Virus record (IMG/VR): IMGVR_UViG_3300025000_000053
Location: 62,001 to 126,000 of that record
Strand: one strand, 5' to 3'
Length of the DNA: 64,000 nucleotides
This document shows, in pieces, positions 2,216 through 30,933 of the stretch. Made by a program: the position numbers and the translations under genes. Numbering within the stretch: the stretch's first letter is position 1; each line of letters opens with the position of its first letter. Below the pieces are notes generated by a model that was not told the origin of the DNA, did not search any database, and saw only the letters and a program-made list of their open reading frames with translations.

Positions 2216-2830
2216 TTATATTTTTTCATGAAATTCTAAAACGGGTCTCCAACCAATATCAATTGATGAATATGCTGGCGGACAATTAAAATAACCTAAG
2301 TTTTCACCATAACCATTAAATGAATATGTTGACCTTGGTTGAGAAAACATATTTGGTAACTTTTGACACCATGAATAAATATAAAGCCACTTTTTTAGTT
2401 CAGATTTATTAGAATTATTTTTTATAACTTCATCTATTTCAGGTATATTAAATTCATCAGGATCAAGTTTTTCACTACCATTCATCATTAGTCTAAGTTT
2501 AGAATGTGGTAATGCTGAGCTAATATTAATAATTTTTTCACCATATACTAATCCATGTTCATGAAGGGTATCTATTGATATATTGATTAAAATAACTCTA
2601 TCACATATTAAGATTTTTTTATAACCATTTTTAATAACATGCCATTTTAATTTATCCTGTTCATCAGACTCTAAGTTTCCAATTGTCCATTTAGACATAT
2701 CAGGTAATGTTAAAAAGTCTGATATATCACTCTCTTCCCCTTTTTCAATCCATGGTCTCTTTGGTAAAGGTTGAATAACACCATCTCTTAATAGTACACC
2801 TAAATTAGTAATTCCATGATATTCTAACAT
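2216..2830 (-). CDS. Putative C-type-lectin-fold (DUF6273-like) protein
   Basis: KILICDRVIL and C-terminal IGWRPVLE motifs seen in Firmicutes phage fibre/CLec-like domains. Confidence 0.5.
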   Translation of the reverse strand: MLEYHGITNLGVLLRDGVIQPLPKRPWIEKGEESDISDFLTLPDMSKWTIGNLESDEQDKLKWHVIKNGYKKILICDRVILINISIDTLHEHGLVYGEKIINISSALPHSKLRLMMNGSEKLDPDEFNIPEIDEVIKNNSNKSELKKWLYIYSWCQKLPNMFSQPRSTYSFNGYGENLGYFNCPPAYSSIDIGWRPVLEFHEKI

Positions 2831-2881
2831 TTTACACCCCCTAAATATTTTTTTATTATTTATGTTATTTAAATAATAAAA

Positions 2882-2913
2882 AATAAATCTAAGAAATTAA
2901 TCTTAGATTTATT
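2882..2913 (-). terminator. Intrinsic terminator, identical to 2177..2208
   Basis: Same 32-nt hairpin. Confidence 0.65.
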
Positions 2914-2922
2914 AAATATAAA

Positions 2923-3402
2923 TTAAGTAATTTTATTATTAGCCGCTAATAAATACATTATTACATTTGCAGTAATTTCAGGGTCTTCAATATTAAACCC
3001 AGTTATTAATTCTATAGTTTCCATATAGTTTTTAAAATAAAAGTATTCTAAAAACTTAATTGCTTTTTTAGTAAATTCTTCTTCATTTAATTTACTAACA
3101 TTTTTCCAATTACGAATAATAACTTCAACAGTACGTTCAGGTTGATAATTTTCTGTTCCGAACCCACCATACCAACCTGAAGTTAAATAAGCAACTAAAC
3201 CGGCAAATGAACTAGTTTTAATATTTTTAATTCCAGGATACTTTACAATTGAATAATAAAGAGCATTATTTAAAACAGAATTTCCATGTTCTTTATCTTC
3301 ATTAATATTAGTACATTCTTTAGAATTTAATAAATTCAATACTTTATTTTCTTCAGTGGGATTATCAAAATATTTTAAAATAATATCTTCATTTAATAAC
3401 AT
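2923..3402 (-). CDS. Hypothetical protein
   Basis: 159-aa ORF with AAGGGG SD. Confidence 0.65.
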   Translation of the reverse strand: MLLNEDIILKYFDNPTEENKVLNLLNSKECTNINEDKEHGNSVLNNALYYSIVKYPGIKNIKTSSFAGLVAYLTSGWYGGFGTENYQPERTVEVIIRNWKNVSKLNEEEFTKKAIKFLEYFYFKNYMETIELITGFNIEDPEITANVIMYLLAANNKIT

Positions 3403-3422
3403 TATTAAAACAACCCCTTTTT

Positions 3423-3782
3423 TTAGTTTAAAGTACCTTTAATTTTTTCAATAAATATTTCAGCATCAACTAATAAGTCCTTTCTTAATTTAGCAAAAGA
3501 ATTATTACGACCTATATTATACATATTTAATAATTCAGCTATAATCACTTTTTCTGATCTGTTATCAATATTCAGATTTTTAACGGACTTTTCTAAATTA
3601 AGGAATAATTGGGAATATTCTGGATTATTTTTAAGTGTTACTTCAATATAATTTTTACTATTTAACTTCCCAATACAACCATCTAAATCATATTCATCAG
3701 GAATAAAGACATATAAGTATTCATCATTTTCATCAAATTCTTTATATAAAACCAATCCTTCCATCATTAACACTCCTTTCAT
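3423..3782 (-). CDS. Hypothetical protein
   Basis: 119-aa ORF directly downstream of the PurA-family gene; SD AAGGAG suggests a start a few codons in. Confidence 0.65.
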   Translation of the reverse strand: MKGVLMMEGLVLYKEFDENDEYLYVFIPDEYDLDGCIGKLNSKNYIEVTLKNNPEYSQLFLNLEKSVKNLNIDNRSEKVIIAELLNMYNIGRNNSFAKLRKDLLVDAEIFIEKIKGTLN

Positions 3783-3785
3783 ATA

Positions 3786-4799
3786 CTATAATTCAATTAA
3801 AGTTTTTTTACCTGTACCAATATAATTAATCTTACAATTTATTTGGATTTCAAATTTTTGTATATACCTTTTAATAATATCCGACACTACATCCGCCGAT
3901 TCATTACATGTATAATCAATATAATCTAAATGATTCATAACAACTATATTTGGTTTGTTTACCATTATTGCTCTCTTAACAAGATCTGCATCAAACTTAC
4001 CAACTCTTCTTTTTCTTAATGTAGCTGATGTATATTCAGTTAAATCAATGTCGGACCCATATATAGGTAGTCTTTCCCATGATATTTCATTTTCTAATGG
4101 ACCTGAATTACCTCCAACTCTTATTGGAAAAGCTCGAATAACCATAATAATATTTTCGACATCAAATGGACTCATTCCAGATTCCATTAAAAATCCTGCC
4201 GCAGTTGTATCTCTGCTAGTACAATATGGGTAATTTTTAGAATGAATTGGTGATAAGTCGAACCCCTGTGTACCCTCAATAATAACATGTTTACCTTCAT
4301 CTAAAAGGCCTCTTAAATATGTTTTTGTATCACAAATATATTTTTTTATACAAGCACAATCTTTAGCAAAAGTTATATTAGATGTTCTTTTCAACCTTTG
4401 GATAACGGCTTGTCCTGTCCCACTTTCAGTAGAACCAATACTAAGCTGTAATCTATCTTCTCTTTCACTTATTTTCATACATTCATCAATAATAACTGCA
4501 AATGGGTCTATTTTAAGATTATTGTTTTTAACCTGTGTTTTATTTATTTCTTGAAATAAAATACCCAAATCAATATACGAACCACTAGGCAGTATACTAA
4601 CAATATTTTCATCAATAGAAACAGTAGGTAAAATTCTTAATACAAACTCACCTTTATTTTCATCGACAACAATATGACCAGAGTTAGTCCCACCTACACG
4701 TACAACAGCAGAAGCTTTTAATTTCTGTGAGAAAAAATATGATACCTTTCCTTTACCCTCAGAACCATACTGCCCACCTACTATAATAGAGATTGGCAT
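3786..4799 (-). CDS. purA: Short adenylosuccinate-synthetase-family enzyme with PurZ/PurZ0-like signatures
   Basis: GGQYGSEGKGKV, GGTNSGH, EGTQG, YPYCTSRD, FPIRVGGNSG, RRVG, NHLD; Ser replaces the PurA catalytic Asp13. Confidence 0.9.
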   Translation of the reverse strand: MPISIIVGGQYGSEGKGKVSYFFSQKLKASAVVRVGGTNSGHIVVDENKGEFVLRILPTVSIDENIVSILPSGSYIDLGILFQEINKTQVKNNNLKIDPFAVIIDECMKISEREDRLQLSIGSTESGTGQAVIQRLKRTSNITFAKDCACIKKYICDTKTYLRGLLDEGKHVIIEGTQGFDLSPIHSKNYPYCTSRDTTAAGFLMESGMSPFDVENIIMVIRAFPIRVGGNSGPLENEISWERLPIYGSDIDLTEYTSATLRKRRVGKFDADLVKRAIMVNKPNIVVMNHLDYIDYTCNESADVVSDIIKRYIQKFEIQINCKINYIGTGKKTLIEL

Positions 4800-10728: not shown

Positions 10729-13700
10729 TTAAATATCTTCTTCTATACCATTCATTTTAATCTTAATATAAAAAAGATTTGTATTTTCATTCTCCTTCCT
10801 TTTAACTTGAAATTTATTATTAATATCTCTTATAGATTTAATTCTATCTAAATATTCTTCTTTATTTTCATAATCAAGTGAAACAAAACATTTATTTGGT
10901 TCGTCTTCTTTACGATAACTAAATAAATCTTTTTCAAATAAACATTTAAAACTCTCTGGTTCTCTTGAATCATCAAAGAATAATCCATGAGTTTTACAGA
11001 ATGGTGTTACAATACCTGAAGTTCCCATAATGTTCATATAGATAGTTAATCTATACAGTTCTCCTATGAACTTCCCTAAGCTTTCCTTAGGATATCAGAC
11101 TATATCACCATCTCTATATAATAATATTTAATATAGAGAGTTACCTATTTCGATTTAAGGGATTTTCACCCACTCACTTGAGCCCTACTCCTAATGCTTA
11201 TTTCAAAGCTAAAGGATAGTCGTTGAACTTTATTCTTATATATAATAAGAATCTTAGCTGCGGATCACTCAATCTTTTACCTTGTTACCATACCCTAGAT
11301 AGTTAGTCTAAGCCATTATATTATTACTAATATAACTTGGTAGTAAAAGCTCTAAGAACTTCCCCGACAATTAAAGTAATTTTCATTATAGATTATTCCA
11401 TAATGTCCCAGATTTTACATTTCTAGGATCTGAATTGCCGCATACGTTAATATCGAGCTTCCCAATGTAAGATGGGTGAATATCACGATATTTTTTTGAT
11501 ATCCTATTATCATTCTTGTTCCCAACACTATTCGGTTTTTAATTCACATAGATCGTTAATCTATGCAGTTCTCTTATGAACTTCCTTATCTCTCGATAAG
11601 ATAATAGACTATATCTTCATCCATTATATAATCAGTATAATGGAGTTTCCTATTTCGATTTAAGGGATTCTCACCCACCTACTTAGGCCCTACTCCTATT
11701 GTGTATTCCAACACTAAAGGATAGTCGTTGAACTTTATTGTTATATTAAAAAGTATAGTTTTTTGATATATGCACCCATGAAATCCTTTTTTTTATTTTC
11801 CATATTAATCCATTGTATGCCATATTTATTTGTATATTTTTAGATAACATATTTAATTCCTCTTTTATTTCATAAGTGGAATATTTCTTTTCTAATAAAT
11901 TACATATATCATGAATTAATTTTGCTGAATATTTGTTATACACATGGGATTCACCCTTAGACGGATGTTGTAATCCTTTAATCCATGAATGTTCAATATT
12001 CTCTTTAGGAGTAACCCATTCTAAATTCTTATAATAATTATTACCTTTAAAAGTATCCTTATGATTAATTTGAATAATTTTTTCATTGAAAAATATTTTT
12101 AGTGGTAAAAAATAATATCCAACTAATCTGTGCACATAAAATTTTCTCCTTCTAGTATAAATAGCTACCAATGAACATCTTAAATATCCATCTTTATCAA
12201 CAAATGGTTTTATAAGTTTATCAGTTAGTTTATTTCTAACTCTACCATAATTACTAATTTCATATATGTCTTTTACATTATATTCTATAATGTCTTTCCA
12301 TTCTTCTTCATGGGTTTGAATGTGTATTATCATTTAAAACACCTCTTAATATAACAATCTTAGCTGCGGATTACTCAATCCTAAAACCTTTTTACCATAC
12401 CTTAGTTGATTAGACTAAGCCACTATATTGTTCCCAATATAGTTTGGTAGTTTTAGGCTATAAGAGATTTCCCGACAATTAAAGAAAACACAGGCCCTTA
12501 ATTGACCTTTAATAGTATATCTCAGTTTACTAAAAAAGTCCATATCATTTATTTTATCATCAAATCTCAATAGTCCTGAATCATGTAAATTCTGAATTAA
12601 TATATCGCCTGGGAATTTAAATATTTCTTCAATATTTTCTAAAGTCATTTTATTACCTAAACTTATAACTCTATTCATTCTTTTACTAAATGCTTTAGTT
12701 AATAAAGAAGCAATATATTCATTACATCTTAATCTTTTATTGTCTATAGATAAATTATCTTTCTTTCTTAATTCATCAAAATTTTGAATCATCCATCTGA
12801 TAACTGAATAAACATTCTTTCGATGTTCATAGTCTATCTTCAATATATTCTTAGTAGTTTCATCTATTAATCTATCAAAGAAAACTAAAGTATTTAATCC
12901 TTTTTCATAATAATTATAAGCCATAGTAGCACTTAAGCTACCGATACGTCCAACCCAATACTCTAAATCATTTAAAAATTCAAAACTTAATCTATTATTA
13001 GAAACATTTATAATCATGAAAACTATACTCTGTACATATAGATATTTGTTAAAGAAGAATCTATTTACTTTTATTAATATTTTCTTATTAATACGAAAAT
13101 ATATATATTTGTCTAAATCTACTTCTGTTTCAGTAAATTCTATAATAGAATCTAGTGAGAAATATTTAAGTGTTTTTTCAACACCCATTTTAGCAAAATA
13201 AAATAAAAGTACATCGACTTCTTTTCTAAACACAAATACCCCATAAGTATTAGCAGTATAAGTTTCTCCTTGAGTATCTGGATATTCCTTTTTATTTCTT
13301 TTTAAAGATAATGGCATTAATGATTTAAGAATTAAATTCTGTTTGGTTGTATAAGTTGAACTATCAACAAGTTGATATATTAAGAAATATTTTTTACCTT
13401 TAATAGTGTAATAACCATTTTCATCTGGAATTGGTATTAATAATTTCTTAGTAAATAATTTACTCTTATTCTTACAATTTAAATTAAATCTTAGTTTTAA
13501 TTCCCCATATCGACTATCTTGTAAATACATATATTTTTCTGAAACTTTTTTATTTCCTTCTTTAGTTTGTTTAACTTTCTGTCTTGTTGATATATAATCA
13601 TTGATATCAATCTTAGATTCATCATCAATGAATTCATATCCAAGAAATTTGATATTCTTAAGAATCTCTAATGATTTACAACTATTAGCAATATAATGAA

Positions 13701-14873: not shown

Positions 14874-17036
14874 TCAATTTTTTCTTTCATATTTAAATAT
14901 TTTGTAAGCATCCTCTAATGTTACAATAGGTATATAATCTTTTTTAGCTTTATCAACTTTAGATGATTGAACACCTAAATCTTTTACAACTACCATATCA
15001 ATCCCTTTATTATAATTATCAACAACTAGTATGTTTTTATCGTCAAGGAATTTTTCAAATTCCCTATCACGGATTTTAGTAAAACATACTTTACCAATAT
15101 ATTCACGCAAATCTTCTTTTATAACTAATTCGGAACATAAGAAATTTATAAGTTCAATATTACTATTTACTCCTTTAATTATCTTTTCAGCTGTTTTATT
15201 TTTTATTCCTCCTATCATAGTTAATTTTTTTACATCATTATTTAAACATATATCTTTTAATTCATTCAAATAATATATATTTAAAATACGTTTAAATATT
15301 TTTCTCCCTATATCGGGTATCCCCAAAGAACCTAATAATTCATAGTTATAAACAGTTTTACGACTTTTAATACTATCAACTATTTTATTAAATATTTTTT
15401 CACCAAATCCTTTAAATAATAGGATTGTTTGTTTATGATCTTTAATAAAGTATAAATCTTTAATACTTTTTACAACACCTAATTCATATAATAATGTGAT
15501 AATACCACTAGAAATATTAGGTATAGATATCTTTTCAGCATAATTTATAATTTTACCTATTTTTCTAGAATCACAATTTTCATTAACACATTTTAATATA
15601 GGATCTTTAACTAATGGTTGTTTACAATAACGACATTCTGTTGGAGTTTTAAATAGTTTACCTTTTTCATTTCTTTTACAAGTTTCATCTATAATTAAAT
15701 ATGGAATTACATCATACTTAATTATAACTTCATCACCTTTTCTTAATTTACGTTCTTCAAATGTATCTATAGAACCTAAAGAAATATTAGTTATTGTATT
15801 ACCATTTATTTTAACTGGTTCAATTATAGCAACAGGTGCTATTGAACCTAAAATACCAGTTGACATTATAACATCTTTAATTATAGTTCTTTTTTGTTCA
15901 GGTGGTAACTTATATGCAACTTCAAATTTATTAATATTATTTTCTCTCCCAAGTTGTTTAATGGTATTTTCATTTGCAAGAGTTATAACAACACCATCAA
16001 TCGGGATACCATCTTTTCTAACTGAACGAACCATAGTTTCTATAACTCGTTCAATATAATCAAAGTCAGTAATATCTTCAATTAAACTAAATCCTATTCT
16101 ACTATTTAAAATTGATGTAGCAAATTCATCACTTATTCTCTGATATTGAAGAGGTATTATTGTTAGATATTTTAAAAGATTTTTATTTATATCTTTACTT
16201 GTATTAAGAATTGATGAAACTGCACTTCTTGAACTTTTTAATATTCTTTCATTCTTACAAAATTCTTCAAAATCAAAATCCTTCATAATAATTTCTGTTT
16301 TTACACCATAGTCCTCATTAAATATCATAAACTCATATTTATTATCGTCACACATCATAACCTCTTTATAATATTTAATATCTACAAGACCAAAATTAAA
16401 TTTGATTCCATTAAATAAATCAGTTATATCTATTGCTTCATTATTATCAACATCACCTCTAGTTAAAACTTTGTCAGCTGTTTTTAAATTAGATTTAAAT
16501 TCAAAAATACCAGATATACCATCATATTTTGGTGTCATTCTAGCAACTTTCTCAACATTATTTAACTTTCTCCCTAATTTATTTTCAATACCTTTTATCC
16601 AATCTTCTAAAGATTTTCTATTATCCTTTCCCTTATCTTTCTTTCTAATAAAATGAATTTTATCTAAAGTACCTCTTAAAGCTGGATAACTGTGATAACC
16701 TATTTTTCTATCTTTAACTTTATTAATAGGAGCACCAACAATTTCTTTCATTTGTAAGTCTTTGTTCAGTTCATATAATCTATCATAATCTTCATCACTA
16801 ACAGGAGAATCAACTTCACTATTATTATAAATATCTTGCAGTATCTTTATTATTAATTCAATAATAATTAAATCATCTGAATTATAATTTTCAGTCCCAC
16901 TTAATAAAATATTTATAATTCTATTAATTCCAATGGTATTTAATTTTTCTACAATCACTTCATAATCATCAAAAATATCTAATCTTTCAACAAAAATAAC
17001 TGATAATGAATCAATAATATTTTTTTTGTCTAACAT
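14874..17036 (-). CDS. ligA: NAD-dependent DNA ligase
   Basis: TPKYDG adenylation motif, TRGD, DGVVI, AYK, C4 zinc finger, HhH and BRCT-like C-terminus. Confidence 0.95.
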   Translation of the reverse strand: MLDKKNIIDSLSVIFVERLDIFDDYEVIVEKLNTIGINRIINILLSGTENYNSDDLIIIELIIKILQDIYNNSEVDSPVSDEDYDRLYELNKDLQMKEIVGAPINKVKDRKIGYHSYPALRGTLDKIHFIRKKDKGKDNRKSLEDWIKGIENKLGRKLNNVEKVARMTPKYDGISGIFEFKSNLKTADKVLTRGDVDNNEAIDITDLFNGIKFNFGLVDIKYYKEVMMCDDNKYEFMIFNEDYGVKTEIIMKDFDFEEFCKNERILKSSRSAVSSILNTSKDINKNLLKYLTIIPLQYQRISDEFATSILNSRIGFSLIEDITDFDYIERVIETMVRSVRKDGIPIDGVVITLANENTIKQLGRENNINKFEVAYKLPPEQKRTIIKDVIMSTGILGSIAPVAIIEPVKINGNTITNISLGSIDTFEERKLRKGDEVIIKYDVIPYLIIDETCKRNEKGKLFKTPTECRYCKQPLVKDPILKCVNENCDSRKIGKIINYAEKISIPNISSGIITLLYELGVVKSIKDLYFIKDHKQTILLFKGFGEKIFNKIVDSIKSRKTVYNYELLGSLGIPDIGRKIFKRILNIYYLNELKDICLNNDVKKLTMIGGIKNKTAEKIIKGVNSNIELINFLCSELVIKEDLREYIGKVCFTKIRDREFEKFLDDKNILVVDNYNKGIDMVVVKDLGVQSSKVDKAKKDYIPIVTLEDAYKIFKYERKN

Positions 17037-19561: not shown

Positions 19562-22446
19562 TTATATTTTAATATCAATAACAAATTTTCCTTCATTAAA
19601 TTTCCTTTTTTCAATCTCATCATCTATAAGTTTTTCAAAATCTCTTTTAGTTCCAACAAATACTTTATTTTCTTTATATTCATTAGTAATGTCAATTCTT
19701 CTTTTAATATCTTCAAATTTTTTATTATCAGTTAAGAAGAACTTTCCATTATAAAATTTACCTTCAAGATGTCCAGTATTAATCTTTATATCAAATAGGT
19801 CATTATTAAATTCTATACCTAATCCCATTGATTTTAAAAATACCGATAATATTTCAATATTTCTATTTTTAAAATTTGCTTTATACTTAAAATCTTTTAT
19901 AGGATTTAATCTTGTCATTAAATTTTTACCTAAATCACGTCTACCTATAACTGATGACCTATAGAATAGATGTAGTTGAGCTATTAGTTCAGTTGGAACC
20001 CCTATATTAGTATTAAGATTTTCATCAATACCTATTCTTATAGGAGTTTTAGAATAAAGTTCCTGGTGAGTTTTAGCTTTATTAGATTTTTCAGGTAATC
20101 CTTTTCTTGATAAAGTTCCAGTTGATCTAGCTGAAAAACCTTTCTTAGCTGTTTGCATTAATTTCATTACATACATATCTCCAACTATTAATTTCTTCAT
20201 CATTTTAATCTTTCTACCAAATCTATTTACATAAACATCATATTGTTCAATCCAATCATGTTCTTCATATAATTTAATAAGTTTATCAAATAAGAATTCC
20301 TCTTCCCATAAAGGAGGTATATGAATAAATATACCTTCTTCAACTAAATTATTGAAAAATTCTTCCTTACCAATGATACTCAATTTTCTTAAATATTCTC
20401 TTAACTTTTCTTCCTGGTCTTTATTAAAATAACTTATTATATTAAGAAACAAATCTTCTTTTTCTTTCATATTAGTCAGTGTTTGAATACGGTCCACTGT
20501 TCTATTGCATATAAACGTAATTGATTGTTCAAAAAGCTGGTATGAGTTTACAATTGTTTTAGACCATATCTTCAGTCCTATAAAGAACTGCCTCCCGTTT
20601 CGGGTTTCCCCTACTCTACTCGCTTCTTCAGTTATAGATAAATTATAACTTATGCTTTCGATGGCCGTTGAGCACATTTCAAATATTACTATTTGAAACT
20701 TCGCTGCGGATTACTCAATTTTAAACCTTTTTACCATATCTGAGTAGTTACTTCAGCCCTTATCTATGTCACCATGATAAGTTGGTAGTTTAAAATTATC
20801 GAACTTTCCCGCAATTAGAGAGGTTTTAGATCGCCTAAACCTTACCAGTCCAGCGATTGATTACAGATATTGAATTAAATAGAATATCAACACGCTCTCC
20901 AGTTTCTAAGAATGGCATTTCATTATCAGGTAATATTTTTGATATAACACCTTTATTACCATATCTCGTTAAATTCACATAGATCGTTAATCTATGCAGT
21001 TCTCTTATGAACTTCCCTAAGTTTCCTTAGGATACTAGACTATCTCTTCATCTCTATAAAATAATATAGAGAGTTACCCACTTCGATTTAAGGGGATTTC
21101 ACCCACTCACTTGAGCCCTACTCCTAATGCTTATTTCAAAGCTAAAGGATAGTCGTTGAACTTTATTCCTCATTATAAGGAATCTTAGCTGCGGATTACT
21201 CAATCTTTTTATTATATAATAAAAAGCTCTAAGAGCTTCCCCGACAATTAAAGTAATTTTCTATATATGTTACCATATATAGGGGCTAAGCTACATAACC
21301 CGTTATTTTTTGCCCTACTTCTAAATAAGCATTTTTTTCAACTAAAAATTCTATTACTATATTAGAAAATACCGAGTTATTTTCTTCTCTCCACTTATAC
21401 TTTTCATCTAATATATTCTTAGCTTTTCTCATATAAAAACTAACTTCTCTAGAATATTTAGAACCAGAATCAATTATCTGTTTACATCTTTTAAATATCT
21501 TCTCATAATAAACTAATTGCATTTTATAATATTTCATTATTTGTCTATTAAAATCATTTTCTTCTAATTCATCTAAAGTTTTATTACAATAGATATCTAT
21601 ATCAATAATTTTACCTTTACCCTCAATAAAGAATAATACATCTGAAGTAAAATCAATCTTTCTAAGATTAGATTTCTTTAAATCATATAACAATTGATTG
21701 TTATGAATTCTTCTCTTAGCACAAATTACCTTATCTTTAACATATTCATTTATATCAGGAAAAGTTTTATAATTATTACTATTGCCATAAATATTACAAA
21801 ATATATCATTATCATTTAAAGAAACTTTAACTCTTTCAACTTCTGTTGAAACCATTCTTTTTGATAATGACTCAGAACAAACAATAGCATCTTCAATAGT
21901 ATTATTTTCTAAAAGGTACATAAATTTAACATTAGTACCATAACAATAATTCATATCATCATCATAAGATGTACTCTTATAAAGAACTTCGCCTTTATTT
22001 ATTGAATTACCAACTTCTTTATTATCAATATTATTGGTATTATACTTAAAACCATATCTTTCTGTTAAGTCTTCTACAGATTTCTTTTCTATAATATCAT
22101 ATTTATCATTTTCTTTATCATATACAAATAATAAATAAAATTGTTCTTCATTTTTATCATCTGTAAATTTACTTATTTTATCAATAATAACACAATTATT
22201 TTTAACCTTTTTGAAACCAGTAGAATTCTTACCTACTATATTCTCATAATTAGTAAAAATTCTTGGAAACTCAGGTTCATTTAAAGTAACACATTGTTTC
22301 AAATGAGCAGTAAACATAACATTCCTTGATGAACTAATATATCCTGGATTAGTTAATAACGTCATCCCAAATATATCATCTTTACCTTTAAATTCTTTTT
22401 CTTTCTCTTGTAGTATCTCTTTTAGTGACATTGTGGTTTTATACAA
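19562..22446 (-). CDS. rpoB: Multisubunit RNA polymerase beta-like subunit, C-terminal half (non-virion type); 3 exons, about 750 aa
   Basis: Exons 22446-21298, 20966-20852 and 20550-19562. Splicing restores GQKITG|RYGNKGVIS and INR-L-NSYQLFE; also IEDAI, YVMKL, ARSTG. Confidence 0.9.
20551..20851 (-). ncRNA. Divergent group I intron I4 lacking P2 and P9 (phase 1)
   Basis: P1 ATCGCT|/GGCGAT with U-G pair; P10 TAAACT/GGTTTA; P7 GGCCA/TGGTC; only 11 nt from P7 to terminal G. Confidence 0.85.
20967..21297 (-). ncRNA. Group I intron I3, no ORF
   Basis: GGT| 5' site, terminal G before AGA TAT GGT; canonical core; P9 CCTAAG-GAAA-CTTAGG. Confidence 0.9.
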
Positions 22447-22536: not shown

Positions 22537-24491
22537 TTATGCCGCTTCTTTAAATTGTTTATCTTGTGATTTTTCTAATCTATCGCATAATTCAAAAATA
22601 TTTAACAATTGACCATTTTCTTCTGGTTCAACATGTGATAATTGTTTTTCCAATATAGGTAATGATCTATTAAATAATTCATATCTTAATTTTTCATTAG
22701 TAAGAAATTCTTTTCTAAATTTCCTACTATCAAATTTAATATCTTTTACTCCTTCAATATATTTATAAGGATTACGTCCAGCAATTAACTCATTATCTTC
22801 AGCAAATCTTAATTGAGTTAAAATTGGATCAAATCCAGTAGACTGATCATATATAAGATTTACAAATTGACCAGCTTTATTTGTTCTAGATTTTAAAAAT
22901 TCAGCTCTTACACCAAAACCATCAAAACCATGTTCATCTTTTTTAAATTTTTCTGAACCTATAGCTATGAAGTTTATTAATAAATTAGCATAATAAATCG
23001 TATATTCACATTAGTCGTCAGCCAATGCAGTTCTCTTCTCTTATGAACTTCCTTATCTTTCGATAAGATACTAGACTATATCTTCATCCTTAATAAATTA
23101 TTTATTAAGGAGTTACCCATTTCGTAAAGAACTTTTTAAGTTCACCCTACCATTATTGACTTGTAGGTCTACTCCTCAGTCTAAATTAGACTTCATCAGA
23201 TAGTCGTTGAACCTTTCTCATAGTAATAATATGAGACTTGGCTGCGGATTACTCAATCTTTTTATTATATAATAAAAAGCTCTAAGAGCTTCCCCGACAA
23301 TTAAAGTAATACTAACATAATATTACTATTATGCCACCCTAAATTTAGGTGCATTCCCACCCGTAAAGTTCACATAGGTCGTTAGTCTATGCAGTTCTCT
23401 TATGAACTTCCTTATCTTTCAATAAGATACCAGACTATATCATTAACCTAATAATTTCTTATTGGGCTACTTCCTATTTCGATTTAAGGGATTTTCACCC
23501 ACTCACTTGAGCCCTACTCCTAATGATCATTTCAGATCCACTGGGATAGTCGTTGAACTTTATTCTAATAATTTACTAGAATCTTAGCTGCGGATTACTC
23601 AATCCTAAAACCTTGTTATTAATATAATTTAGTAGTTTTAGGCTCTAAGAGCTTCCCCGACAATTAAAGAAGTTTTCAACATACATTTCTGTATGAGGCC
23701 CCACAAATCTCTAGTTTAGGGATACTCTGGTCCATCTTCATATATAATAATTGTGGTTGTGTTTTATGCATCGGATTTATTTCCATCTTTTGATTAATGT
23801 GGTTTATAGCAATAACATTTATATTATATGCTTTTATAATTGGCATTAATCTTTTATAGAATTGAGCTAATGCTTTAGCAACTCTATTGGCATATGTCCC
23901 ACCTTCCATTTCATTAGAAGTATCTTTTGAAGCAACTGTTGGTATTGAATCAATAATCATTACAGTTGGAACAAATGCCTTTATTGGTCTATTAAATTCA
24001 TCAACTAATCCAGTATTATACATATAATCTTTTCTATTAGCTTCTTTTTCTTGAGCTATTTCTACTATACTATTAAAAATATCTTCAATATAATTTTTTT
24101 CTTGCTTTAAAATATATTTATCATCAAGTTCTTGTTGAGTCATAGATGTTACATTTTTTATTCTAGTATATGATAAAACTTGTTCTAAATCAAAATGTTG
24201 AACAAATGCATTGTCACTGAATCGTCTAACAATATTAGCTGCAATCTGAATAGCAAAAGTAGTTTTGGCAGTACCAGACTTACCTATAATTGTCATAAAT
24301 GTGCCACCCACTATACCAATAGATGAATAAGTTGTTATGAGTTCCTCATCCAAATTCCTAACTTCAATCATATATCCATTTCTATAGTCAAATGGTACAA
24401 ATCCTGTTGGATAACAAATAGAAGTTTGTGTTGCATTAAATAATCCTTTTTTATCCTTTTCTCTTAATCTTGAAAGCATTTTATTAGCCAT
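22537..24491 (-). CDS. recA: RecA/UvsX-like recombinase; 3 exons, about 416 aa
   Basis: Walker A GKSGTAKT, IIDS, INHI. Exons 24491-23718, 23361-23347 (15 nt) and 22998-22537 give DQSIP|GGNAP|IYYAN, equivalent to RecA GGxALKFYAS. Confidence 0.9.
22999..23346 (-). ncRNA. Group I intron I6, no ORF
   Basis: CCT| 5' site with P1 CACCT/GGGTG; terminal G before ATT TAT TAT; canonical R and S elements. Confidence 0.9.
23362..23717 (-). ncRNA. Group I intron I5, no ORF
   Basis: CCT| 5' site (P1 weak), terminal G before GGT GGG AAT; canonical core. Confidence 0.85.
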
Positions 24492-29887: not shown

Positions 29888-30933
29888 TTATTTTAAAGAT
29901 TTTTTAACCAATAAACCTTTTGTAACTAGATCACTAGAAATTCCCATTGATATTAAATGCACATCAATTAAATTTAATGTTACCTTATTTTCAACATTAT
30001 TAGTTAAACTATCTAAAGAAACAAATCCTTTTTGGGCTATAAAGGCATACATTTCATTTTTCATAACCATATCATCTGCTCTAGGCGTAAAAGTTCATAT
30101 TGTTTGTTAAACAATACAGTTCTCTTATGAACTTCCCTAACTTTCATTAGGATACCAGACTATATCATTAACCTAATAATTTCTTATTGGGCTACTTCCT
30201 ATTTCGATTTAAGGGATTTTCACCCACTCACTTGAGCCCTACTCCTGTTGCTTATTTCAAAGCTAAAGGATAGTCGTTGAACCTTTCTCTAATATATTAG
30301 AGACTTAGCTGCGGATCACTCAATCTTTTTATTATATAATAAAAAGCTCTAAGAGCTTCCCCGACAATTAAAGAAGTTTTCTATATATGTTACCACATAT
30401 AGGGGCTAAGCTATGTAACCCATGAGTTCTCGTAATGCATCATTAGCTCCAACAGATAATAAAGAAAAGTTTTCTTGATCTGATTCCCTAGCATTTTTAT
30501 CTTCACCAACAACCTGACCAGTCATTGCAGAACGACTTGAACTCTTTGTTGATAAAGTATTTTTTTTACTTAAGAATTGTTGCATTCTTTTAATATGGAC
30601 ATAACCAACAGGTACTTCATATTTAGTAATAATTGGATTATCAATACTGTTATTGACAAAAGGTACTACAACTCTTTCAAATAAAGGTATATCTAATACT
30701 TTTGCAGCTTTTGTTATATTTTCAATATTTAATTCTCTTTCATAATCAATCATATCTAAAATAAGATATTGCTCAATATCTTTAAAAAATTCTTTAAAAA
30801 ATATATCAAATTGATTATCAGACATTGATTGAAACATGTCTTTATATTTTTTAGTATTCGCATCTGTTGGGTCTAATGCACTAAATGTATCATAAATCAA
30901 TTTTTCCATTTTTTTTCTTTTGTCTTTAGTCAT
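29888..30933 (-). CDS. rpoB: Second RNA polymerase beta-like C-terminal subunit (probably virion RNAP); 2 exons, about 237 aa
   Basis: Exons 30933-30418 and 30085-29888. VGYVHIKRMQQ, TGQV, ARESDQE, ELMG|PRADD match the beta YMxKL...QRxGEME...ExLTxKSDD region. Confidence 0.8.
30086..30417 (-). ncRNA. Group I intron I7, no ORF
   Basis: GGT| 5' site (P1 GGGT/GCCC), terminal G before CCT AGA GCA; canonical core. Confidence 0.9.

Follow-up and report, generated by a model that had tools for sequence, protein, structure and literature searches.

A group I intron without a P9 domain in the RNA polymerase beta-like gene of a giant groundwater phage

The window discussed here is a 64,000-nucleotide (nt) stretch of DNA that corresponds to bases 62001-126000 of the 249,853-base-pair (bp) virus record IMGVR_UViG_3300025000_000053, obtained from a groundwater metagenome. 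The record represents a giant, uncultured phage, is AT-rich and abounds in group I introns, one of which interrupts an RNA polymerase beta-like gene at positions 20551-20851 of the minus strand. We consider it quite probable that this element is a functional and mobile phage intron of the IA2 type from which the entire 3' domain, consisting of P9, P9.1 and P9.2, has disappeared and which also has no P2. To judge from its sequence, it is more plausibly a natural design that works than an error: three related phages have conserved it, with compensating mutations, and the same loss recurs in two other phage introns.

The three phage variants are the window itself and two further phage contigs of the same metagenome, L018 and L030. 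All of them carry the intron at the same site and have open exons. The features of the window copy, its exons and the neighbouring upstream intron are the following.

20551-20851, minus strand: the whole group I intron, 301 nt, with G20851 as first base and G20551 as terminal guanosine (omega-G); Rfam family RF00028
20852-20966, minus strand: exon 2, 115 nt, encoding ...SVINR and the first base of a leucine codon; Pfam RNA_pol_Rpb2_6, 7e-10
19562-20550, minus strand: exon 3 of the RNA polymerase beta-like gene; phmmer match to 7S00 chain C, E 1e-22
20967-21297, minus strand: the upstream sibling intron I3, 331 nt, 74 bits in Rfam, with P2, P9, P9.1 and P9.2 present
20852-20857, minus strand: end of the 5' exon, AUCGCU, which is the 5' strand of P1; U20852 forms the U.G wobble at the splice site, and six of six pairs are standard
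20830-20835, minus strand: internal guide of P1, GGCGAU, pairing with AUCGCU at six of six positions
20836-20841, minus strand: P10 guide, GGUUUA, immediately 5' of the P1 guide and the same in all three variants
20545-20550, minus strand: start of the 3' exon, UAAACU, the partner in P10, pairing with GGUUUA at six of six positions
20824-20829, minus strand: 6-nt joiner CUAAAA between P1 and P3, where sibling introns have P2; no hairpin
20818-20823, minus strand: 5' strand of P3, CCUCUC, pairing with 20596-20591 in agreement with the Rfam alignment
20809-20814, minus strand: 5' strand of P4, UUGCGG, with its partner CCGCAG at 20709-20704
20714-20803, minus strand: P5 and its three-way extension of P5a, P5b and P5c hairpins, from a constrained fold
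20673-20703, minus strand: P6 and the P6a hairpin, whose loop carries a 1093-nt insertion in L018
20662-20666, minus strand: 5' strand of P7, GGCCA, pairing with UGGUC
20597-20661, minus strand: the P7.1 and P7.2 insertion typical of subgroup IA, with P7.2 formed by GGG-GAAA-CCC at 20611-20602
20591-20596, minus strand: 3' strand of P3, GGGAGG, pairing with CCUCUC
20573-20590, minus strand: P8 hairpin CAGUUC-UUUAUA-GGACUG, from the pairing check and the variants
20562-20572, minus strand: J8/7 (the UGAAGAUA region) and the 3' strand of P7, UGGUC (20566-20562), the same in all three variants
20551-20561, minus strand: the 11-nt tail UAAAACAAUUG, which stands in place of the entire P9-P9.2 domain and whose only G is the terminal G

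The Rfam covariance model RF00028 recognizes the intron with 58.4 bits (E 3.2e-12), above its gathering cut-off of 50, and every helix of the pseudoknotted P3-P7-P8 core and of the P4-P6 domain can be found. Within P7 the G20666-C20562 pair occupies the usual guanosine-binding position. Between P7 and the 3' strand of P3 (P3') lie the P7.1 and P7.2 hairpins that mark subgroup IA2, and their GAGUAGAGUAGGGGAAACCC module is common to many phage introns. At the 5' end the P1 and P10 guide strands are contiguous and form one unbroken 12-nt guide; in L018 and L030 the base that follows the P1 guide is a U, which lengthens P1 to 7 bp. Joining 20852 to 20550 yields a protein that is colinear with the solved beta subunit of phage AR9 RNA polymerase (7S00 chain C): residue 410 of that chain aligns with R51 of the 51-amino-acid exon 2 query, its residue 413 aligns with residue 2 of exon 3, and the intron-split leucine codon together with the first asparagine occupies residues 411-412, with no gap.

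What the intron does not have is equally well delimited. Just 6 nt separate the P1 guide from P3, which leaves no P2, and after P7 neither P9 nor P9.1 nor P9.2, of which P9 is part of RF00028, is found in the intron. The extended domain 9 that is a feature of IA2 is absent as well, at most a putative 2-bp P9.0 (AA/UU) being possible in the tail. By score and by core the element is a member of group I, and it departs from the family in P9 and the extended domain 9 only.

These readings agree closely with an earlier note made from the letters alone, which had described P1 with its U.G wobble, the six pairs of P10, a frame-restoring join, the presence of P3, P7 (GGCCA/UGGUC) and P8, the absence of P9 and P2, and 11 nt between P7 and the terminal G; direct reading gives 20561-20551 for the latter, the AR9 comparison confirms the join, and the comparison with a group I covariance model that the note had suggested came out above the cut-off. 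Its label 'minimal' is a misnomer, since the intron measures 301 nt and keeps a large three-way P5 extension in addition to P7.1 and P7.2.

An intron that appears to end so abruptly raises the question of whether the end has been placed correctly. The true 3' splice site might lie further downstream, with a P9 hidden in exon 3, and the Rfam alignment does push its P9 columns over the junction into the exon. Those columns are, however, flagged as mismatched non-pairs, exon 3 aligns with the AR9 beta chain from its residue 2, and a join that is colinear and free of gaps leaves no room for a splice site further downstream. No conserved hairpin occurs in the first 70 exon bases among the three variants, which rules out an exonic P9. 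A pairing between AAUUG of the tail and CAAUU in the exon, about 35 nt downstream, was considered too, and by eye it is not kept in L018. The idea that the loop of P7.2 is a novel substitute for that of P9 was likewise discarded, as an Erwinia phage relative described below has the same P7.2 plus a P9.

Alternatively, the short tail might be an assembly deletion, a possibility the earlier note had named as one that would undo its proposal. L018 and L030 have the same tail as the window, the entire intron recurs without change in L017, a contig of another metagenome, and a Logan contig of run X1 spans the 3' junction without any difference, while Logan contigs of runs X2 and X4 contain the L030-type variant. 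Recovery of the same tail from independent contigs, metagenomes and sequencing runs excludes such a deletion, and we regard a misplaced 3' end of either kind as barely conceivable.

The metagenome scan with a 20-mer covering the 3' strand of P7 (P7') and the tail returned the three phage variants plus five other contigs (L024-L026, L028 and L029). We treat these five matches as chance; L024, L028 and L029 have no Rfam intron, and L025 and L026 share their flanking sequence with L024. In L024, L025, L026 and L029 the 20-mer, GATATGGTCTAAAACAATTG, belongs to an unrelated element, a long hairpin with perfect pairing whose base it forms (AAACAATTGTAGGGATGC...GCATCCCTACAATTGTTT).

Comparison of the three variants offers a view of how the intron has changed. 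Between the window and L030 the flanking exon DNA is 87-91% identical and the intron 92%; between the window and L018 the corresponding values are 70-78% and 95%. The last 40 or so nt of the intron are invariant between the window and L018, and L030 differs there in P8 only, so that P7', J8/7 and the tail are the same in all three. Where substitutions do occur in helices, they often come in pairs. The P5a pair 58:132 is U-A in the window and C-G in L030, the L030 P8 (CAUCUC-AUUU-GAGAUG) shows two fully compensatory changes, from G-C to U-A and from U-A to C-G, and in the P6a stem of L018 two A-U pairs have become G-C (by eye). To these five fully compensatory changes, one in P5a, two in P8 and two in P6a, can be added one-sided changes from wobble to Watson-Crick pairs in P7, P5 and P8, for example in the second pair of P7, which is G.U in the window and A-U in L018 and L030. 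The five compensatory pair changes indicate that the RNA fold is maintained by selection. The L030 copy was missed by Rfam owing to its filters and was read by hand.

This pattern bears directly on the possibility that the intron is a decaying relic that no longer splices, in which case the beta gene would be dead or would yield two polypeptides, the second starting from an in-frame AUG at 20677 within the intron. In jumbo phages the parts of an RNA polymerase subunit are often encoded by separate genes, and an open reading frame (ORF) of 371 amino acids (20677-19562, minus strand) does run in frame from the intron into exon 3. In L030, on the other hand, the AUG is out of frame, and a 2-nt change in the length of P8 together with an in-frame UGA breaks the ORF while the RNA pairing is kept; with the frame broken, the split-gene idea fails and was rejected. 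A split at this point would also interrupt the most conserved beta motif. Given further that P1, P10, the terminal G and P7 are intact, that changes are compensatory and that the exons are open in three phages, a relic of this kind appears very improbable to us.

How the intron came to have so short a 3' end can be approached through its relatives. A motif scan of the 249.9-kb genome identifies a single family of at least 16 group I introns; the P9-less one belongs to it and thus has 15 siblings in the genome, five of these in the window (near 11114, 21046, 23082, 23441 and 30166, minus strand). In all 15 siblings P7' is followed by P9 with a GAAA loop, P9.1, P9.2 and a short 3' end, about 65-70 nt altogether and nearly identical from one sibling to the next, and sibling introns carry a P2 hairpin between the P1 guide and P3. 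The earlier note, which had counted six siblings, had characterized their 3' hairpins correctly. In two related contigs the other introns found by motif scan have kept P9-P9.2 as well.

Outside this genome, the 5' half of the intron has counterparts with 71-75% identity in introns of Bacillus phage Internexus and of Staphylococcus phage K. The 5'-half relatives that were examined, from Internexus and from an unclassified bacteriophage record, both keep P9; the Internexus intron is also without P2. The 3' half is 77% identical to an intron of Erwinia phage pEa_SNUABM_54 (L031), its closest relative, which has the same P7 and P7.2 and, downstream of P7, forms a GUGA-looped P9 and two additional hairpins. 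Since the 15 siblings and the closest relative in the Erwinia phage retain P9-P9.2, the domain has probably been lost rather than being primitively absent.

The intron also appears to be mobile, as its distribution indicates. It occupies the same insertion site in diverged hosts and is more alike between them than the flanking exons, the pattern expected of homing. In L018 the P6a loop holds a 1093-nt insertion that encodes an intact homing endonuclease gene of 341 amino acids (2824-3849; PHROG 559 5e-47, PHROG 9084 2e-20 and a weak match to Pfam DUF5889). The window copy and L030 have no endonuclease gene and no intron-borne ORF. Purifying selection on the fold, together with mobility, would require that the intron be spliced in vivo. 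An intron-minus allele was not encountered at the P9-less site. At the I3 site both states can be observed: L018 runs uninterrupted through GQKVTG-RYGNKG, where I3 is exactly absent, and a DNA contig of run X2, from the same groundwater study, joins 20966 to 21298 and omits exactly 20967-21297, which means that intron-plus and intron-minus alleles coexist there.

Does the intron need help from outside, the option that the earlier note had set beside a naturally minimal ribozyme? P9 normally braces the core, its loop docking on P5, and a real intron spliced in vivo might require a trans-acting helper in its place, be it a phage or host protein (a maturase or chaperone) or a P9-like piece of RNA. 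With their intact P9 domains, the other introns of the genome, at least 15 in number, might conceivably serve as such helpers in trans. For a P9-less trans-spliced algal intron the authors have proposed accessory factors or a third piece of RNA (PMC3873408). Several observations speak against such a requirement. Neither the window copy nor L030 has an intron ORF, and no homologue of the L018 endonuclease was detected in the window's genome by tblastn, which makes a maturase of that family unlikely. L018 keeps the P9-less intron without having I3, so I3 is not required in cis. The same architecture turns up in unrelated phages and genes, as detailed below, and a single specific helper would account less easily for that; engineered P9-less cores work alone (PMC11417360). 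We therefore think it rather unlikely that a helper substitutes for P9.

The recurrence just mentioned emerged from a scan of viral contigs for the shared P7.1/P7.2 motif, which gave 12 loci, two of them with short-tailed introns.

L035, 3123-4005, minus strand: intron in nrdD, of the sunY type, at STP/AES, with a 9-nt tail, GAAAAAACG, from P7 to the 3' splice site
L034, 5250-6434: intron in a family B DNA polymerase gene, just before the DTDS motif, with the tail UACUG, 5 nt after P7

The L035 intron contains an HNH-like ORF of about 700 nt, on account of which Rfam missed it, and it was read by hand. It cannot form P9.0, and Enterococcus phage EF1 has a homologous nrdD intron at the same site in which P9 is present. 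The L034 intron has no P2 and carries an endonuclease gene in P6; its ORF has a C-terminal motif similar to the L018 endonuclease. Both introns possess a P10 of six out of six pairs that adjoins the P1 guide, UUCUGU/GCAGAA in L035 and GUGUCU/AGACAC in L034. By our own estimate six pairs at a fixed register arise by chance in about 0.4% of cases; a 6-bp P10 in all three P9-less introns is accordingly not a chance occurrence. A wider pattern scan that allowed any GNRA loop in P7.2 added one P9-keeping intron (L062) and two sequences that are not introns. In another intron, L043, P7 is imperfect and an ORF follows immediately upon P7'.

Taken together, these cases may represent a natural and recurrent class of P9-free phage IA2 introns that splice themselves accurately by means of a continuous P1 and P10 guide and a tail of 5-11 nt, a generalization for and against which we see the arguments as evenly balanced.

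For the beta-gene intron we infer the normal two-step, guanosine-initiated removal from the RNA polymerase beta pre-mRNA, with P10 taking part and no helper being needed. In the first step an exogenous G would attack after U20852 in P1; in the second, the terminal G20551 would enter the same P7 pocket and the exons would be joined. The 3' splice site would be set by G20551, the only G of the tail, and by the 6-bp P10 beside the equally long P1 guide, with the 12-nt guide aligning both exons; the 2-bp P9.0 may help to fix it. The core would presumably be held by the retained periphery, namely the three-way P5 extension and P7.1/P7.2 with its GAAA loop.

Several points weigh against this interpretation. 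P9 is counted as part of the catalytic P3-P9 domain, whereas P2 can be absent (PMC3984707), and one paper terms P9 'essential' (PMC3873408). Three tiny SOLiD metatranscriptomes are listed from the same study, none with this stretch, and the one that was mapped gave zero reads. Two pairs in P5/P5a are broken in L030, and the high identity of the intron between phages could reflect recent homing instead of long-term selection. As for recurrence, L034 and L035 are represented by one contig each, and P10 is not peculiar to introns without P9: EF1 forms five of its six pairs and Internexus about 5 bp (by eye), from which it follows that P10 was there before and is not proven compensation. In sibling I3 direct reading found no P10. 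P10 thus seems to have existed beforehand and to have made the loss of P9 tolerable.

Comparison with known systems helps to place the intron. IA2 introns have been described with an extended domain 9 comprising P9.0, P9.1 and P9.2 (PMC4227781). The phage representatives, such as T4 td, nrdB and sunY/nrdD, Twort orf142 and the SPO1-type DNA polymerase introns, as well as IStron ribozymes, share with the beta-gene intron the P1 U.G pair, the P3-P8 core, P7.1/P7.2, P10 and the terminal G. They too interrupt essential phage genes within a conserved motif; for the RNA polymerase beta gene that hosts the present intron, essentiality is probable. An endonuclease gene in a peripheral loop is another shared trait, seen here in one copy (L018). 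What sets the beta-gene intron apart is that 11 nt replace the extended domain 9, which all relatives examined keep.

P9-deleted group I ribozymes are otherwise familiar from the bench. The sunY 'miniribozymes' of Doudna and Szostak from 1989 (Mol Cell Biol 9:5480) were reportedly also without P9-P9.2 and catalytically active. In a Tetrahymena ribozyme reduced to the P1-P8 core, P9.0 and the terminal G, both steps still take place, and in that system losing either P9.0 or P10 is tolerated while losing both is not (PMC11417360). This 'P9.0-omegaG' cis-splicing design has the same P1-P8 core free of P9, P9.1 and P9.2 as the phage intron, the 3' site being set by P9.0 and/or P10 and the terminal G (PMC11417360). 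Engineered ribozymes of this sort are laboratory deletions that act in vitro and are often less efficient; the phage intron, in contrast, occurs naturally in what is probably an essential gene, has been conserved between phages and, by its distribution, appears mobile.

Among natural group I introns, the searchable full-text literature yielded one P9-less case only, the mitochondrial trans-spliced group IB intron Pa.rnl.1 of Prasinoderma coloniale, which its authors call 'very unusual' (PMC3873408). It differs in being organellar, in pieces and of type IB, with a missing third RNA piece or accessory factors suspected, whereas the phage intron is a continuous cis-acting IA2 RNA. Mobile introns in RNA polymerase genes of jumbo phages are already known (PMC11620839). 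The jumbo phage PhiPA3 harbours one with an HNH endonuclease (gp210) in a virion RNA polymerase gene, and nothing unusual has been reported on its ribozyme architecture. The intron described here is common to three related phages from one groundwater sample, and PhiPA3 differs in phage group, subunit and site.

The beta-gene motif region is an intron hot spot. Bacillus phage vB_BpuM-BpSp (L033, AR9-like, record 117336-118596) has a beta-gene intron that ends just before VISEIVPDD and another that begins after LNPLG, four codons upstream of the site of the P9-less intron. In the Erwinia phage (L031, record 227761-229035) the intron lies in the NADFDGD motif of a beta-prime-like RNA polymerase gene annotated as three hypothetical proteins; no canonical U...G junction pair that restores the NADFDGD motif could be placed there.

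With respect to the genome as a whole, the intron load of this 250-kb phage is unusually high. At the curated threshold Rfam reports four group I introns in the window, one of them being the present one (20541-20882, minus strand), and the whole-genome search returned 12 matches above the cut-off and four weaker ones. The cmscan run on the window and the genome search each overlook introns that the other detects: 30135-30427 (78 bits in the genome search) escapes cmscan of the window, and 21015-21307 (74 bits in cmscan) escapes the genome search, which means that filter losses affect strong matches too. Two of the window's group I introns (23051-23727, minus strand), with only about 50 nt between them, interrupt a RecA/KaiC-like ATPase gene, and an ORF at 23676-24491 has a Pfam KaiC/ATPase match. 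Downstream of the polymerase gene, at 14874-17036 on the minus strand, follows an NAD-dependent DNA ligase gene with the Pfam domains DNA_ligase_aden, OB and HHH_5.

If our interpretation is correct, a group I ribozyme could work in vivo without P9, and nature, not only the bench, would run such a ribozyme on P1-P8 plus P10. Selection of the 3' splice site with minimal P9 and P9.0 could then be studied directly in a natural example. For engineering, introns of this kind may provide compact natural scaffolds for permuted-intron and circular-RNA designs, in which the 3' domain is now trimmed by trial. There is a consequence for annotation as well: covariance models and pipelines expect P9, and introns without it or with a large ORF are easily overlooked, as happened here, where both Rfam searches missed copies and the beta gene was called as fragments.

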